From contig JBLDXI010000015.1 of the NCBI GenBank assembly GCA_047495785.1, positions 1,302,001 through 1,366,000 of the forward strand: a stretch of DNA of 64,000 nucleotides, in the 5' to 3' direction. This DNA comes from Lepidodermella squamata. Taxonomy: Eukaryota > Animalia > Gastrotricha. Position numbers and translations under genes: made by a program. This document shows positions 47,663-56,954 of the stretch, piece by piece; the stretch's first letter is position 1; each line of letters opens with the position of its first letter. Below the pieces are notes generated by a model. The model was not told where the DNA came from and made no database searches. It saw only the letters and a list, made by a program, of their open reading frames with translations.

Positions 47663-49599
47663 CACTTACAAGACTGTTTTCAGAGCTTGGGATCAAATAA
47701 AAAAGCTGAATACAGCCTTCCTACTTTGAATATTTGAAAGAATGATAGTTTTAATGTTATTATATCTGGTAAAAGAGAAGTGCATGGTCTCACACATATT
47801 TACACTTGCTAGCACCAAAATAATCGAGCAACTAAATTAGGCAAATTAGGCCGCGCCCGATCGATTGCACCGATATAACTCTTCAGACGTCACACAAACA
47901 CATAGACTGCGATGGGAACAGAAAGCGGCGCGTCATCAATCAAACTGAATATTAAGATTTCTAAATATCTGCTAATAGCAACCCGTTTGACATTATATCG
48001 TGAATAGTAAAAAAACATCATGGACATGAATAATATTTATAACGATTATGCTTGCGCAGCGGAGCGTTATGAAAAGTCGTTTCGCTAATGTCTTTGCAAA
48101 TTACCATATCGCCTTTCAAAAATTTAGAACTCCTACCGCCTATTGACCGTAATAATAGTGGACGCGTTTTGTAGTTGCCCCTGTCGTAACTTGAACTACT
48201 AATGTATGACGCAGATTCAGGTCTCCCGAGCTACCAATAGCTCTTAAACTGCTAATATAAAATACCATCAGCTATAAATAGCTCCGCATCAAATTCAATT
48301 GTCGCGAACTGATAAACTCGAACAGCATCCTTTTCGCTTTAATCTTATAGCTTCCTCAATATTAGCGGGACTGGGTTGTAAGAGGCTGAAGAAAGTCTTC
48401 CCACAATTTCCTGATGGCTAAGAAAAATTCGATAATTACGATAAATTTAGTTCAAGCTTCCAAGCATTGCCTCTTCATTGCTTCGTATTCACCACGATTT
48501 TAGAAAAATCTTCAAAACTCGAATTTTTTTATATGTTTCTGAAATTCTAAATTTGGCTTTGTAACAGCCTTAAAAGATCAATAACTAAACAGGCGATAGT
48601 ATCCCTTATGTTCCCATTTAGAAATGGGATCAAACTCGGGATTATGCTGAAACTGAGCTGACAGATTATCGATAGATAAGAAAGGTAGCATTGTGCTTGC
48701 TTCATGCAGGATTATTTAGACATTACATTTCACTTTTTCTGCGTAACATCCACTTAGCTGCGGGCGCTGTCTGCGCACAATTTCCCGCCGAAGCTTCCGT
48801 TCATTTCAATCCGCACTTCCCAAAATAGCATAAACATTTTTGTATCGTTTTACACTATAATATATGGTTTGTTTTTCACAGTGCAGGGAATATCAGTTTT
48901 TGCAGAGCAACCATCTGCGCCATCTAAGCAAATTACTGCGCCGAGAGCGAGCCATTGATAAAATATTTGCCAAAGCTATTTCGCCGCTCTCGGGTCAAAT
49001 TAACTTCGACTATCGCTGAAAATGCTATTAAGTCATCATTTTCAACTTCCCATGACAGCAGCGTGGCTGACAGTTGGTGTGATAAGTCATTCTTGGCCGA
49101 CAATTTCATTAAATAATACTGTTATCGCGCAGTTTCCATTATCCTGGAAATATTCTTTCAGTTTTGTTACGAAATGTTAAGCGTTAATCATTTTTGGGCG
49201 AGAAGAATTAATTGACGCACGGTGCGTACCTGTTTATTTAGATCGTACCGCTAGGGCAAAAAATCATCTGCAAAGCAAGAGAGATCGATAATAACCCAAA
49301 ATGCGCGCTGTACAGGATAGATTTACAATACCTGTTCGCTTTGATGTATACATTAGCGTAATGAAGATGTATTCACGCGCCACTAGCAACGTAGCAATAT
49401 GAAACGATAATTCGCTCATGATCATCGCCAGCGCAAATCGTTTTTTCTCGCGCTCATCTCTTATAAGCACAATTGCTTGCGTTTCCTATTTCAGGAATTT
49501 TTCAAGAGTTCTCACCATAATATTGATCGTAGTAGCAGTAAAAAAGGCATTTTTTAACAAATTCAATTTTCACACAATAGGTATGATATCCGAAATTTG

Positions 49600-52500
49600 A
49601 TGGCCGAGACTGTCAGATTTACCTCTTCGTCCATCGAACTGCTGAACGAAAGTTTATACCATGCGACGAATCAACCGCAGCCGGATTCTGGTGGAAATGC
49701 AACGGAGGACGAGCATTATGTCGAAGGTTTTGGCAGTGATTGCGTTAAAACGTTCGCCATGCACATTACTGCCATTGTGCTGTTCGTTGTTGGTGCGACG
49801 GGTAACATCGTTTCAGTTGGTGTCATGTCGCGCAGATCGCTCAGAGCCCGGTCTTTTTCACTCTCCCTTATCATTCTCGCTACACTCAATTCGCTGGCAC
49901 TGTTTTTCGAGGCCCTCACCTCAGCTGATACTCTAATATCGCAAGTAAGCTTTACTTATTTACCAATTATGTTGATCGAGTTTTCGAATTACACTATAAT
50001 TTTGAGAAATTGGTAGTACATTCCAAAAAAGCAGCAAATATCAGTTCAAGTAACGGTCACACAAAGCACATCGTCCTATTATATGAACCGTTAAAAAGAT
50101 GTGAGAATGAGGATTTTTCCTACATCTCACATGCAAGGTAGCACGTCCCAGATATTTCATGCTTTAATTCGAGCGTTGCTGGGATCCGGGAGCTTCTCTG
50201 AAAAAATGTATATACATTAAGGCATACACAATTGGTATCAATTTTCCCATTCATTTAACCCCTTAGTGTTTCCCTGTCTATAATTTGGAACAATCTTCGA
50301 CCTAAATCTCTTGACAGCATTTTCATTTCCAATTTTCTAGGACGCCTTTTACCCCTATGATCTTGATTAAATTCCACGAAAATTGCACGTCGATCGAATT
50401 TAATGCCTATCTAATGCGTCACTCCAACTCATATACCTTGATGGGCATTAATCTAAATGGGCATGGTCCTACTTGTTTGATGAGCATTCCAGAGGACCTT
50501 GCCTAGCTGACCAGGCCCTGACAGGGTTATCAATATTTAAAATTGTGAATTTATTCCTCAGAATATTTCATTCGAGAGAAGCCTCCAGTGGACGATGTGT
50601 ATCATGAAGTTCTTTAAAGTTCTTTACTGTCAACCTGTCCTAAAACAAAAACCAGCTGAACGCTGAAATGCTGATAAACTTACCATAATTGGTAGATAAT
50701 TGGAGATATTAGCGAAAACTGGAATATCTGGACTTCAAATTGGTAGTACTAAGAACTGTCATGTTATATATTTTTTCAGTCCTATGGATCATTAGAGGAG
50801 CATATCGGCGCTATTGGATGCAAGCTGTACCGTTTCTTACCAGCCGTCATTCAACTGATGGATCACTGGGTTGTAGTTTTCATCACAACTGAGCGATTCG
50901 TTGCAGTTTGCTTTCCTCGGTCGTTGAGTAAAGTCTTTTCAGAGCGAAATTCCCGAATCTATTTCGTCATGATGTTCGCCCTTGTTGTCGCGACGCAACT
51001 CTGGCGACCTTATCTGGACTCTCAAGAGGTTTGCTGCTTCAAATTTGTTAATTTCTATAACTCACTGATTTTCCGATAGCCTGCAACTTATAAAAATGAC
51101 TCAGATGGCAATCAGATAGTTGACACCCCTGCGACTTGTAGCGCGGCTGAAATAGCGCTATACGTCGATTTGGACGCCTTTCTTCATCAACTTGCTCTAC
51201 TGTTCTTCTTCCCAGCCGTGGCTATCATGATCATGAACACAGCTGTGATAACTAAACTTTACCACGACAGTCGCCTTCGAGCGGCGAAGCAGCGGCTAAA
51301 GTTGCAAGGCTTAAGTTCTGCTGATGGAAAGTTGCCAGAACTGAGCAAGAAACTGCTCGGCATGCGGAATAAGAACGGATTTGTTAACAACACATCGGCA
51401 TACCTGGCTTCTCCTGATGACGTTAAACAAGCGGCCATTGCAAGGTCTGTGTCGAAGACTGCGAGTGAGGCGGAGCAACGGATAAGGAAAGCCACGCTTC
51501 TACTGCTGACTATTACCTGCAGTTTCTTGCTTTACATCACACCTCAGCTGGCGCTACTGCTTTATGTTCGATTGACGCATTTGATGGGAGGCGGAGAAGC
51601 TGGATTCGATGCTTTCCTGAAAGTCTGTCGGGTGAGTCACTATTACGAATTCTATTACCTGGAAAATCGATTGCCTTGCTTTTCAATTTTGAAATTGCTT
51701 ATTATTTTGCTCGTCGAAATCTCGAATATAATAGGACGAAATAGCAAAATCAGTCCTTCCACTGGCCATCAAAAGTCCGTGGAGAAAAAGTTGGAAACAG
51801 AACTACAAAATGTTGCCCCTGGTGGGACTCGAACCCACAACCCTCGGATCAAAAGTCCGATGCGATAGCCTTTTCGCCACAAGGGCTTCTCGGGGAATTT
51901 ACCTTCCGTTTTGGCTTTGAATCAGCTTTCAATATTCATCCAACGAAAATGATGACACCTGACGCAATAGGTAACTCCCAACGTCAAAGTAATTAAGGGC
52001 GCTTGTTTTTTCCCGAGAAGCAATAAAAGAGGTTATTGCAACATATTGCATCATTCCGGCTAAGCTTTTACCTGTAGAACATGAGGGTAAGACCAATACT
52101 GTAGACGATGTTCGGTAAGCCCTTGTGGCGAAATGGCTATCGCATCGGACTTCTGATCCGAGGGTTGTGGGTTCAAGTCCCACCAGGGGTAAAAACTTTT
52201 GAAACCGCCGATCAAATTTTCATTTTGTCTTAACTTGTGTTGTGTAATACATTTCTTTGCATAATTTTACTATCTCTATTCCAGGCTCTAAATTTCACCA
52301 ACCTATTCGCTGCTATAAGCTACGCGGACAACTTCTTCATCCAACTGGTTGCTGACGAGAAGTTTCGACTAGAGCTCAAGTTCATGTTATGTAGCTGGTT
52401 AGGCAAATGTCTGCCGATTTTCGAGAAAATCTACCAGAAGGAGCGCCAGCGGCAACGTTCGTTACGGGCTAGCAAGTATGTGAATGACTCTACTGCGGCT

Positions 52501-52902: not shown

Positions 52903-53283
52903 CATTTTTCATCTGCTTATATTATGTTTTCCAAAGATGACATTGATATTTTTGCATCTAAACGGGAACTTGAAAAGCAATAAAGAGAATATGTGAAAAA
53001 CAGTGTTTTCATTACTTTCTAGGCAATTTAGATTAATTTTCTAATTTCATTACAATTGTATGTGCATACTGTAGCTCATGGTAACTGCGGACAATTTCCG
53101 TTTTGCAGTTAAATAGCTTTGCAACACGAACGGTTGTAAACTGTAAACACAGGGTGGGTTGCGTAAAATACTCCGCCTTTCAAGCTTTTCAATGGCGACG
53201 GCCCAAGGTGACTGGACAAATCTCGCTTTATTGAGAAATATTTAAACATTATGAGCAGGGAAAATCAGAAGTCAATATGACTA

Positions 53284-53328
53284 GTCTGACGTATACGTTT
53301 CGTCTCGGCCAAGAGACTCATCAGAGAC
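53284..53328 (-). ncRNA. Minimal type I hammerhead ribozyme
   Basis: Minus strand reads GTCT-CTGATGA-GTCTC(TTGGCC)GAGAC-GAAA-CGTATACG-TC-AGAC. The catalytic core is intact, stems I and II pair, stem III is palindromic, and the cleavage triplet is GUC. Confidence 0.9.
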
Positions 53329-53714
53329 CTTAGTTAAGAAATATCACTGGCCACGCAATCTAGTATGGAGTCCAATTAACTATTCGAAACCATATGAAAA
53401 CCATTAACTATGAAAATTGGGCATAGTGAGGTCGAAATTGCGTCTCAAGAAGAAATCCAGGAGTGAAAACTTGTCGACCTTCAGGCAAAACCGGCTCATT
53501 TTAGGCCTAATGTCCTTATTTACCAAATCATCCTCGAATAACAAAATTTAGCCTCCAAGGCCATTTTCCGCAAGCTGCTCTATTTTTGGATTTCATCTTG
53601 CAAATTGGACGTCGCTAGTTAACGTTTCATACTTCATGCCAAAAGCGTTTTAAATCAACATAAAGCCATTAGACGTAGCTACGTAGCTTTTAGGGATCCT
53701 TATTTTCAAGTGAG

Positions 53715-53782: not shown

Positions 53783-55136
53783 ACATTAGGAATTAGATGG
53801 TAGGTGATAGGACTAATAGCACAGTACTTTGCCATGTCGGCCCATTCCCTTCGAGATGTCGATGTAAAAAATTATAAGAAATTTTACAATTAAAATCGCG
53901 GATAGGAATAGGGATTCCAGATTCCAGACATTAGATGTGCCTGATCGAGCATTATTAGGTTAACGGATAACCCACGTAGCCAAAAATTAAGGTCGTCAGA
54001 ATTCAGGAATTCAGGAAGTCAACAGTAGAAGCGTGGCTTTCTTGGGGTGTCCACTATCTGATTGACATCTGAGTCATTTTTATAAGTTGCAGGCTATGAG
54101 CTATGAGCTACGAGGAAATTAGGAATTTAAATAATTGCATAAAAGCGACGCTGCAAACCTCTTTAGAGTCCAGATAAGGTCGCCAGCGTCGCAACAACGA
54201 GGACGAACATCATGACGAAGTAGATAGCTACGTCTCATGCATAAATCAGGTCGAATTCATAAAATCGCCAAAATTTGTAAATAAATTGGATACCACCTTA
54301 TACAAATTTTAAAAAAATATCACAAGTTTCTGCTTCAAGGCTCGATTTTTGATCTTCGAAAACATTGTTGTTCAAAAGTACCCGCGCTATACGGTACACG
54401 CGGATAAATTAGCTTATCTTTTTATCAGCATTGTTGCGTGTGTTCGCAAAATAAAACCACCAAGGGAAGCATGCAAAGAGACCTTTGAATCAATTTCTTG
54501 AGAAATGGACACTTATGCTTACGTTTGAAAAACAATTTTTCCAGAGTGTTTTTCCTCGCCAATTTCTTTTTGAATTTCTATTTCGCGTTTGTCGCTGTCT
54601 GTTATCAGTGTATTGTATTGACTTCCCTCGTTCATCGACACGTGATTTTAACTCTGTTTGTTTTCAAACTTCACCACATAGCAGGAAACAAGAAGTCTTT
54701 AAAACTAGAGCAGTAAATGCGATTACAGCATCGGCGCAACCATTTAATGCACACACATCTCGTAGCGCATCAAAAAACTGCCGGAAAATGGCGATATGGT
54801 GTGCGATTATTGCCGGCTAAAAGTCTTATCGCGCGTAATTGATTCCAGCTCCCTGGCGATTCATGATTTCTCTCTTGTTTATACCTGCCATTTTCAATGA
54901 ACCGACACCTGTGCTCATACAATAAATAGAAATATATATCGCACACAAAATGCAATATATCAGGAGGAAATTCGTTTTTTACGCCCGAAAACGTGATTTG
55001 GCACCCAAAATCGATGCAGTGTTATCTCGATGAATCGCAAAATGCTTTTTCACAGAAATTGACTCACTTTTTTAGTAAATTTTCGCCTAATATACCTCAC
55101 GATTTTTTTATTGTGTTTGCTTACTCATTTAATTGC

Positions 55137-56954
55137 ATGCTGCATGACGAAGAAATAATGACAACTCCGCCAATGTCAAATGGTTCAATTTTAGACACGA
55201 CGGATATGCCGGATACATTTATTCCGTTCCTTATATTTGAGCGCGGCAATTCATCCAGTTTCGCGAATGACACAAAGCCAGCTGCAGACGTTGAATGCGT
55301 TACACTTACTCAGATTATCACCGTTCTGGTGTTGTGTCTTCTCGGAATTTTCGGCAACATGCTCGCACTAGTTGTTATGAATCGCGCTAGCAGGAAGGAC
55401 GGCCGAAATTCTAGGAAAACCTACCCCTTCACGCTGAGTGTTCTAGCAGTAACAGATTCAATAGTTCTACTATTCGATGCTATCGAGTCTTGCAGTAAAA
55501 TCAATGTTCACGTCACTCAGCGGCCTGATTTGGACATCGAATCGCAGCTGGACTCTTTTGGTTGTGCAACTTGGCGCTTTCTGATACCTATTTGCCGGCT
55601 CATCTCACACTGGATTGTCGTTGCAATAACTGCCGAGCGATTTCTAGCCATCTGTTTCTACTTCAAAGTCAAAGTCTCGCCGCATAGGTCGAAAATCGTT
55701 GTGGTCATTGTTTGCCTCACTGCTGTGATGTCTCAGATTTGGAGGTTATTTTACGACCGCAGATCTGTAAGTTGTTCGTAAGCTCAAGTTAATTTTCTAA
55801 ATGTCTTGATTCGTCTAGAAATACATTTTCCCAATCAATGGAACAAATTCTACCTCAAACGAAACAAGAAGCTGGTATGCATGTGGACCTCCACAAAGCC
55901 AAGTCTTGACCTACATCAAAGTCGACCAATTCTACCACAAAACCGTGCTACTGTTCGCATTTCCCGCCTTCGGAATACTCGTCATGAACACTGCTGTCAT
56001 CATCAAGTTGTATAGAACGCATTTGAGCATGAAAAAACTGGGAGGTGGCTATTTCACTGGTCGAGCGACTCGAACAACAAGGCGAATGTTACCGGTTAGA
56101 AGTTCAAGCTACATGCCAAGCCGGTCTGAAAGCATACTTTCGACCTCAACTGATGTCACGTGTTGCGGGAGTAAGGCTTCAACAGTTTCGCGAGGCTCGT
56201 CAATCGTCTCGAGGCGGAGTCGAGTTAGCACGGCCCTTCTTTTGTTCAGCCGATTCTCATCTACAACAACAGAGTCGTCGAATGGTAGTGACGAGATTGT
56301 TCAAACAGTGCTAAGCAACGACGAGCGCGCTTTCTTGAAGACGAGTTTACTCCTTCTAGCGGTGACTATGAGCTTCCTTATCTGCATTGTGCCGGAACTG
56401 GTCATGTGCCTCTACGTTCTTATCACGCATCTGGTTGTGAGCCCTGAAACGGCAAGGTCGATTTTCACGCAGCTGTGCAAGGTGATCAAGGTCACGGAAA
56501 TCGTCACAACATTCGGCTACGTTGACAACTTCATGTGAGTTTCGCTCAAACTAAATCTGCAATTTCTTGACATTTTCAATTTAGAATTTTCTCGTTTGCT
56601 TGTAACAAATTTCGCCGTGAGGTTTTGATAATTTTCTTCAAGTTTTTTGGCCGCTGTTCTAAACGGTGCGATGACTATTACTATGGCCTGAAATCAGAAG
56701 CTGGCTGCCGAAGGTATTTGAGAGCCACCGTTTCTGTGTCTATAACGCCGCGAAATGCTGGGAGATCAAGCGTGAAAACTTCCAGTACAACCACAAGTAC
56801 TACGCGGCGAACCCTGGGGCAGCAGTGCCCTATTGAAGAGACGACGGAGTTCATGGTACCAGGTTCTCCTCGCTTAGATTCCGTTTTCATGGACACACCC
56901 CCGACTGCACCTAGGCTGAGAACAATCGCTGAGGATATGAAGACTATTTTATAA
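55137..56954 (+). CDS. Rhodopsin-class GPCR, paralog 8
   Basis: GIFGNMLAL, LAVTDS, HWIVVAITAERF, ICIVP, FGYVDNF. Two introns; start is 55137 or 55158. Confidence 0.87.

Follow-up and report, generated by a model that had tools for sequence, protein, structure and literature searches.

Minimal hammerhead ribozymes with a small palindromic helix III are found in the pLTRs of Penelope-like elements, mostly as single dispersed motifs (PMC4209133). Penelope-like elements insert as 5'-truncated partial tandems with the ribozyme close to the 3' end, and they have non-autonomous derivatives (PMC8557442). A 2026 preprint relates the dispersed monomers of animal non-LTR retrozymes to pLTRs (10.64898/2026.07.22.740005). 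We analysed a hammerhead motif in a 64,000-nucleotide stretch of the genome of the gastrotrich Lepidodermella squamata (contig JBLDXI010000015.1, positions 1,302,001 to 1,366,000; hereafter the window, whose own numbering is used for its features). Judged from its sequence and that of its relatives in the genome, the motif would form the 3' portion of a copy, shortened at the 5' end, of a protein-less, low-copy, non-autonomous retroelement of the Penelope/retrozyme type, a reading to which we assign a probability of about 0.68. Such elements are already known from animal genomes, and the window motif is an ordinary, well-preserved example.

Three features of the window are central to the analysis:

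53280 to 53334, minus strand: minimal type I hammerhead motif, found by direct reading of the letters
53272 to 53419, minus strand: 148-bp retrocopy belonging to the "short" 5'-end class of repeat family A, delimited by alignment with 20 other copies
53422 to 53620: decayed MITE of about 200 bp (repeat family B), found by the genome repeat search and adjoining the 5' end of the hammerhead element

Read along the minus strand, helix I opens with ACTA (53334-53331), an AG bulge (53330-53329) and GTCT (53328-53325), and its return strand consists of AGAC (53287-53284) and TAGT (53283-53280), giving an open-ended helix of 4 bp, a 2-nt bulge and a further 4 bp. Between these strands lie the core CTGATGA (CUGAUGA in RNA; 53324-53318), helix II with 5 bp and a 6-nt loop (GTCTC-TTGGCC-GAGAC, 53317-53302), GAAA (53301-53298), the palindromic 8-nt helix III segment CGTATACG (53297-53290) and TC (53289-53288), with cleavage predicted between 53288 and 53287. 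The conserved core CUGANGA...GAAA...UH and the G10.1-C11.1 and A15.1-U16.1 pairs are all present within 53324-53288. An earlier reading made from the letters of the window alone (the sequence-only reading) had described this motif on this strand, with helix I extended across the 2-nt bulge and the same cleavage site, and on re-reading all of its coordinates proved correct. Minimum free energy (MFE) folding of the whole motif does not favour the hammerhead fold (-8.8 kcal/mol, against -11.5 kcal/mol for the monomer MFE; z = 0.42). Minimal hammerhead variants are usually not favoured by MFE folding, and we did not count this result against the motif. Helix III can form at most 3 bp as a hairpin (0.0 kcal/mol) but 10 bp as a dimer (-12.2 kcal/mol for the self-duplex) and, because it is stable only in the latter form, the motif matches the architecture of dimer-acting ribozymes (PMC4209133).

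The probability that the motif is a chance match to the hammerhead consensus is negligible. Within the window, a loose core pattern is not significantly enriched (2 matches, 1.13 expected), and every Rfam model remains below its threshold, as a chance match would have it. A gathering-score scan of the window called two tRNAs only and no hammerhead. In E-value mode Hammerhead_3 alone matched the motif, with 23.4 bits against a threshold of 48.5 and in the wrong topology, and RF00163 found nothing above threshold in the whole genome (best score, 18.7 bits). We read the Rfam hammerhead models as representing canonical rather than minimal variants, and the missing calls are then expected since the motif is a minimal one. 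The Infernal-type check proposed by the sequence-only reading thus returned no call, and support for the motif comes from its recurrence instead. Against chance stand not only the complete set of core bases and three helices but also a genome search (121 Mb, 151 contigs) with the 26 bases specified for stem I, the core and helix II, which gave 19 matches at up to two mismatches, compared with none in the reversed control. Moreover, a general CTGATGAG...CGAAAC pattern is matched 101 times in the genome and 16 times in the control, and the matches form five families (helix II types TCTC/GAGA, TTTC/GAAA, CTAC/GTAG, CCTG/CAGG and TCCC/GGGA) in each of which helix II is perfectly paired, even though the sequences differ. 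Other genomic copies do exist, as the 19 cores and a repeat family of about 30 copies attest, and these copy counts effectively refute the chance reading; at the level of sequence, the motif is intact and embedded in a repeat family. No paper turned up when the literature was searched for the exact core.

Further hammerheads of the genome were encountered in several settings (L-numbers are labels of genomic loci holding copies). CCTG/CAGG-type hammerheads lie in a 1605-bp tandem repeat of eight copies (C32:4488729-4499992), and at the starts of contigs C9, C13, C14, C20 and C41 hammerheads of the CTAC/GTAG and CCTG/CAGG types follow one another every 5-6 kb, an arrangement consistent, as far as sequence goes, with telomeric Penelope-like stacks. 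The TCCC/GGGA variant was located at C12:1258052 and C54:2953019. Hammerhead-only copies with a 12-nt helix III are found on the minus strand at L054:1460-1600 (C7:~4208540-4208600) and L057:1480-1570 (C38:~250100-250160), in both cases in sense orientation within an intron of paralogous P-element-like transposase genes, with the Tnp_P_element HTH and TNP-like RNaseH_N domains upstream of the hammerhead, the TNP-like GBD downstream of it, and a 9-nt microexon directly after the hammerhead-bearing intron. At L056:1465-1730 (C6:12299-12460) and its near-identical duplicate L055 (C54:596459-596620), two direct hammerheads 117 nt apart fill an intron of about 265 nt (gtaaat...tttcag) between two long ORFs, one of which has a weak DUF1258 match. 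The lengthened helix III segments of this pair form stable hairpins (-3.4 and -9.2 kcal/mol), and on this sequence evidence the pair could release a 117-nt RNA; it is the only tandem pair with the window-type core in the genome, and its spacer is unrelated. A GTTTC/GAAAC variant (L080) has neither a proper helix III nor a proper cleavage triplet and was set aside.

A genome search with window positions 53700-53100 gave two independent repeats, A and B. The segment 53397-53269 has 82-91% identity to about 10 other loci, and a search with a longer copy defined family A as a non-coding, dispersed repeat of about 285 nt and low GC content in about 30 places. The likeness between copies stops within a short U-rich tract some 11-30 nt after the cleavage site (positions 272-300 of the reference copy), with most copies ending about 17-20 nt after it. 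The 5' ends, by comparison, are nested, falling at reference positions 1-7 (five independent copies), 75, 133-157 (eight copies, the window's among them), 168-191 and 206-237. The common 3' end, the nested 5' ends and the existence of other copies bear out the sequence-only reading's proposal that the motif marks the 3' end of a truncated or non-autonomous element. The intact motif is present in about 5 of the 21 aligned copies (the window copy, L033, L047, L049 and L052), which speaks against our main reading. Where flanks are legible, target-site duplications of 10-14 bp are found, and four loci have clean ones:

L046: 13 bp
L052: 14 bp
L032: 10-13 bp
L049: 11-12 bp

The longest word common to the flanks of different loci, by way of control, was at most 10 (272 pairs). 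The duplications are T-rich at their start and share bases with the TTGATT at the element's end, an overlap that priming from nicked DNA by microhomology would predict. Family A copies have neither a poly(A) tail nor a microsatellite tail, and an Rfam E-value scan of three full-length copies detected no SINE (pol III) head of tRNA, 7SL or 5S derivation at E ≤0.1. The assembly contains no tandem or dimeric ~285-nt unit; the genome check for tandem copies, which the sequence-only reading had suggested, returned other dispersed copies with no two units adjacent. No inverted adjacent copy, another hallmark of Penelope, was seen either, and both absences count against our main reading. Two copies lie 2.5 kb apart (L038, C50:310382-310502, and L058, C50:307969-308012) and share the core mutation CGGATGA, an early 3' end directly after AGAC and the downstream flank; by these sequence features the pair is a local DNA duplication and not two insertions.

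The window copy spans about 53419-53272 with a minor internal rearrangement close to the 5' end counted in, and its cleavage site lies about 20 nt from its 3' end. It lacks the 5' half of the ~285-nt unit, has no legible target-site duplication and no second ribozyme near it, and is separated by about 600 kb from the nearest other family A copy on the contig. Beyond the hammerhead repeat and the MITE its flanks are unique, and no empty-site paralogue was found, the flanks having no other match in the genome. With the 5' half missing, no ribozyme partner nearby and a helix III that cannot fold alone, the copy is probably an inert, dead-on-arrival relic; its cleavage would most likely require both read-through transcription and pairing with the RNA of another copy.

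Two further elements of the sequence-only reading concern the immediate surroundings of this copy. An AATAAA is indeed present at 53232-53227, but it lies about 40 nt past the common 3' end of family A, in sequence that no other copy has, and because the family likeness ends ~40 nt before it, it belongs to the unique flank and not to the element. The upstream frame said to recall a GIY-YIG tail (RKMALEAKFCYSRMIW, ~53575-53510) is open for 16 codons only before a stop and lies inside the unrelated ~200-bp MITE. The genome holds at least 30 copies of this MITE, which has terminal inverted repeats of 31-33 bp (CATAGTGACGCCGAAATTGCGTC...), and in no other place does a copy lie beside the hammerhead repeat. 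What stands of the proposed Penelope/retrozyme-type terminus is therefore the hammerhead-bearing non-autonomous retroelement, whereas the polyA signal and the endonuclease remnant do not; the window motif itself is explained as a relic.

The site lies between 7tm_1-type ORFs of the opposite strand and is apparently intergenic. The ORFs noted here (51170-51868, 54993-55781 and 49597-50016, all on the plus strand) include halves of rhodopsin-type GPCRs (7tm_1) on either side of the site and, upstream, a weak RVP_2 fragment (retroviral aspartyl protease). Two nearly identical, divergent tRNA genes, at 51814-51886 on the minus strand and 52119-52191 on the plus strand (68.6 and 67.6 bits), differ in the anticodon loop, UUU versus UCU.

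In full-length copies of family A, sequence found after the cleavage site also precedes the reference start. Relative to the cleavage site, these copies, which represent five independent events, begin at about +1, +4, +7, +17 and +31: L043 and L044, which have both flanks in common and represent one event, start exactly at AGACTAGCC, while L037 starts 4 nt in, L032 7 nt, L042 ~17 nt and L031 ~31 nt. In none of these five events does the copy extend upstream through the cleavage site. The resulting terminal redundancy amounts to 3-20 nt in L032, L037, L042 and L043/L044, with no long pLTRs; three full-length copies repeat up to about 15-20 nt of 3' terminal sequence at the 5' end, and in L032 the repeated 13-15 nt lie inside the target-site duplication. 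The redundancy implies a unit of ~285 nt that runs from cleavage site to cleavage site and a template that was either longer than one unit or circular. The positions of the 5' ends, from five events, would fit a linear RNA with a ribozyme-made 5' end, and they are also compatible with a circle copied slightly more than one turn.

These observations can be accommodated by a route in which a master locus would give rise to an RNA either longer than one unit (tandem or pLTR-like) or circularised, and hammerhead cleavage would set the 5' end of the RNA template. A reverse transcriptase (RT), most likely from a Penelope-like element, would be supplied in trans and would be primed by nicked, A/T-rich DNA through microhomology between that DNA and the U-tract, with copying often left incomplete. 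We infer the mobilisation by a Penelope-like RT. On a bolder interpretation, to which we give little credence, family A may preserve the genomic footprint of a Penelope-type transposition intermediate, given that the start of a full-length copy coincides with the cleavage site or follows it closely, and that its end lies in the U-tract beyond a ribozyme left uncleaved. If true, the 5' end of the template is set by the hammerhead, and priming by the RT takes place shortly beyond the following ribozyme.

All ORFs of at least 150 aa in about 40 loci were scanned, and the neighbours tested that had a Pfam match proved to be NB-ARC, disintegrin, ion channel, TRPM SLOG or fucosyltransferase host genes, or a P-element-like transposase. 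At about 25 family A copies there is no RT or endonuclease ORF within 1.5 kb; the RT-linked copies for which the sequence-only reading had proposed to look were not among them, nor was the telomerase-like RT ORF, with or without GIY-YIG, that would mark an autonomous Penelope. Pfam places GIY-YIG at 21 sites in the genome, none of them near any hammerhead, which counts against our main reading, and among these sites no endonuclease-bearing Penelope-like element was found. Searches with element DNA gave short copies only and no autonomous Penelope-like element with the family A 3' end, a further point against the main reading. The genome does contain more than 1000 RT candidates, many with long open frames, and none of the 19 core places is near the best 150 of the >1000 RVT_1 places, a comparison that would miss weakly matching Penelope-like RTs.

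The abundance of these RT candidates, together with the failure to find an endonuclease-bearing Penelope-like element, would suit a SINE-like retroposon moved by a LINE, like schistosome Sm-alpha, with a hammerhead that rides along as a passenger or serves in RNA processing and has no link to Penelope. The 10-14-bp duplications, the 5' truncation and the A/T-rich targets are likewise typical of LINE target-primed reverse transcription. We nevertheless consider this explanation unlikely: the copies have no poly(A) or microsatellite tail and no pol III-type head, their cores (0 of 19) are not near the best 150 RT places, and terminal redundancy combined with a ribozyme near the 3' end is a Penelope-like trait (PMC8557442). 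It is more doubtful still that family A is a retrozyme in the strict sense, with a tandem unit that is expressed, self-cleaved and ligated into a circular RNA of ~285 nt for rolling-circle reverse transcription, the window copy then representing less than one round. The unit length and low GC fit metazoan retrozymes (PMC7229834), and a redundancy of 3-20 nt could reflect an RT that slightly overran one turn of the circle. There is, however, no tandem array or dimer of the unit, the ribozyme is of the minimal Penelope type, whereas that of invertebrate retrozymes is of the canonical loop-loop type, RF00163 has no match above threshold genome-wide, and no copy passes the cleavage/ligation junction at its 5' end.

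Least probable of the biological alternatives, and very improbable in itself, is a ribozyme domesticated by the host for the processing of a local transcript between two GPCR-type genes. The window copy taken by itself might suggest as much, with one difference in its 63-nt ribozyme region compared with six in its 61-nt body. Across the copies, however, the ribozyme shows no slower decay than the body (15% versus 11% differences from the column majority in the ribozyme region and the rest of the copies, respectively). The ribozyme region is thus no better conserved, a point that also tells against our main reading, and the inserted copies decay neutrally. The motif is, moreover, antisense to the flanking 7tm_1 ORFs and apparently intergenic, and its helix III cannot fold as a monomer. 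The preferred reading, a non-autonomous retroelement of the Penelope/retrozyme type, agrees with the frequent 5' truncation with a common 3' end and with the position of the hammerhead near that end, both of which characterise non-autonomous Penelope-like elements.

Family A adds a small, cleanly delimited family to the known association of minimal hammerheads with Penelope-like or retrozyme-type elements, and its value is descriptive. Given more copies or transcript data, its legible target-site duplications, its defined unit and the stop of its 5' ends at the cleavage site could help to test how the ribozyme shapes the transposition template.

Among described systems, Sm-alpha is the SINE-like hammerhead element of Schistosoma, reportedly described by Ferbeyre et al. 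in 1998 and said to be high-copy and to have a pol III-type promoter. Family A resembles it as a short dispersed retroposon with a type I hammerhead, but has only about 30 copies and no detected tRNA-like head. The endonuclease-less telomeric Penelope-like elements Athena and Terminon carry 3' hammerheads (PMC8557442), and in them, as here, the hammerhead adjoins the 3' terminal priming sequence; they attach to telomeric repeats without duplications, whereas family A is internal, has duplications and shows no telomere-complementary tract. MRC1, a non-autonomous Penelope-like derivative of the Chlamys clade (PMC8557442), is likewise protein-less and 5'-truncated, with a partial head-to-tail redundancy that mimics a pLTR. 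Derivatives of its type, however, have 3' ends in common with autonomous families that are identified, canonical hammerheads are absent from most of them, and the redundancy in family A is only 3-20 nt.

With metazoan non-LTR retrozymes (PMC7229834; 10.64898/2026.07.22.740005) family A has in common the ~285-nt non-coding unit, low GC, the type I hammerhead, target-site duplications of more than 4 bp and dispersed monomers. It differs in having no tandem arrays, and so none of the tandem 150-450-bp units, each with a type I hammerhead, by which retrozymes are defined, and in a ribozyme that is minimal and not canonical with loop-loop contacts. Compared with the minimal hammerheads of Penelope-like pLTRs, family A has no copy with an RT/GIY-YIG ORF attached and yielded no autonomous relative, and its helix II has 5 bp, against the 7-8 bp described for the schistosome families. 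The two are alike in type I topology, a short helix I and a small palindromic helix III, which points to a ribozyme acting in dimeric form, and also in the near-3'-end position of the ribozyme and its occurrence mostly as single dispersed copies taken for truncated elements.
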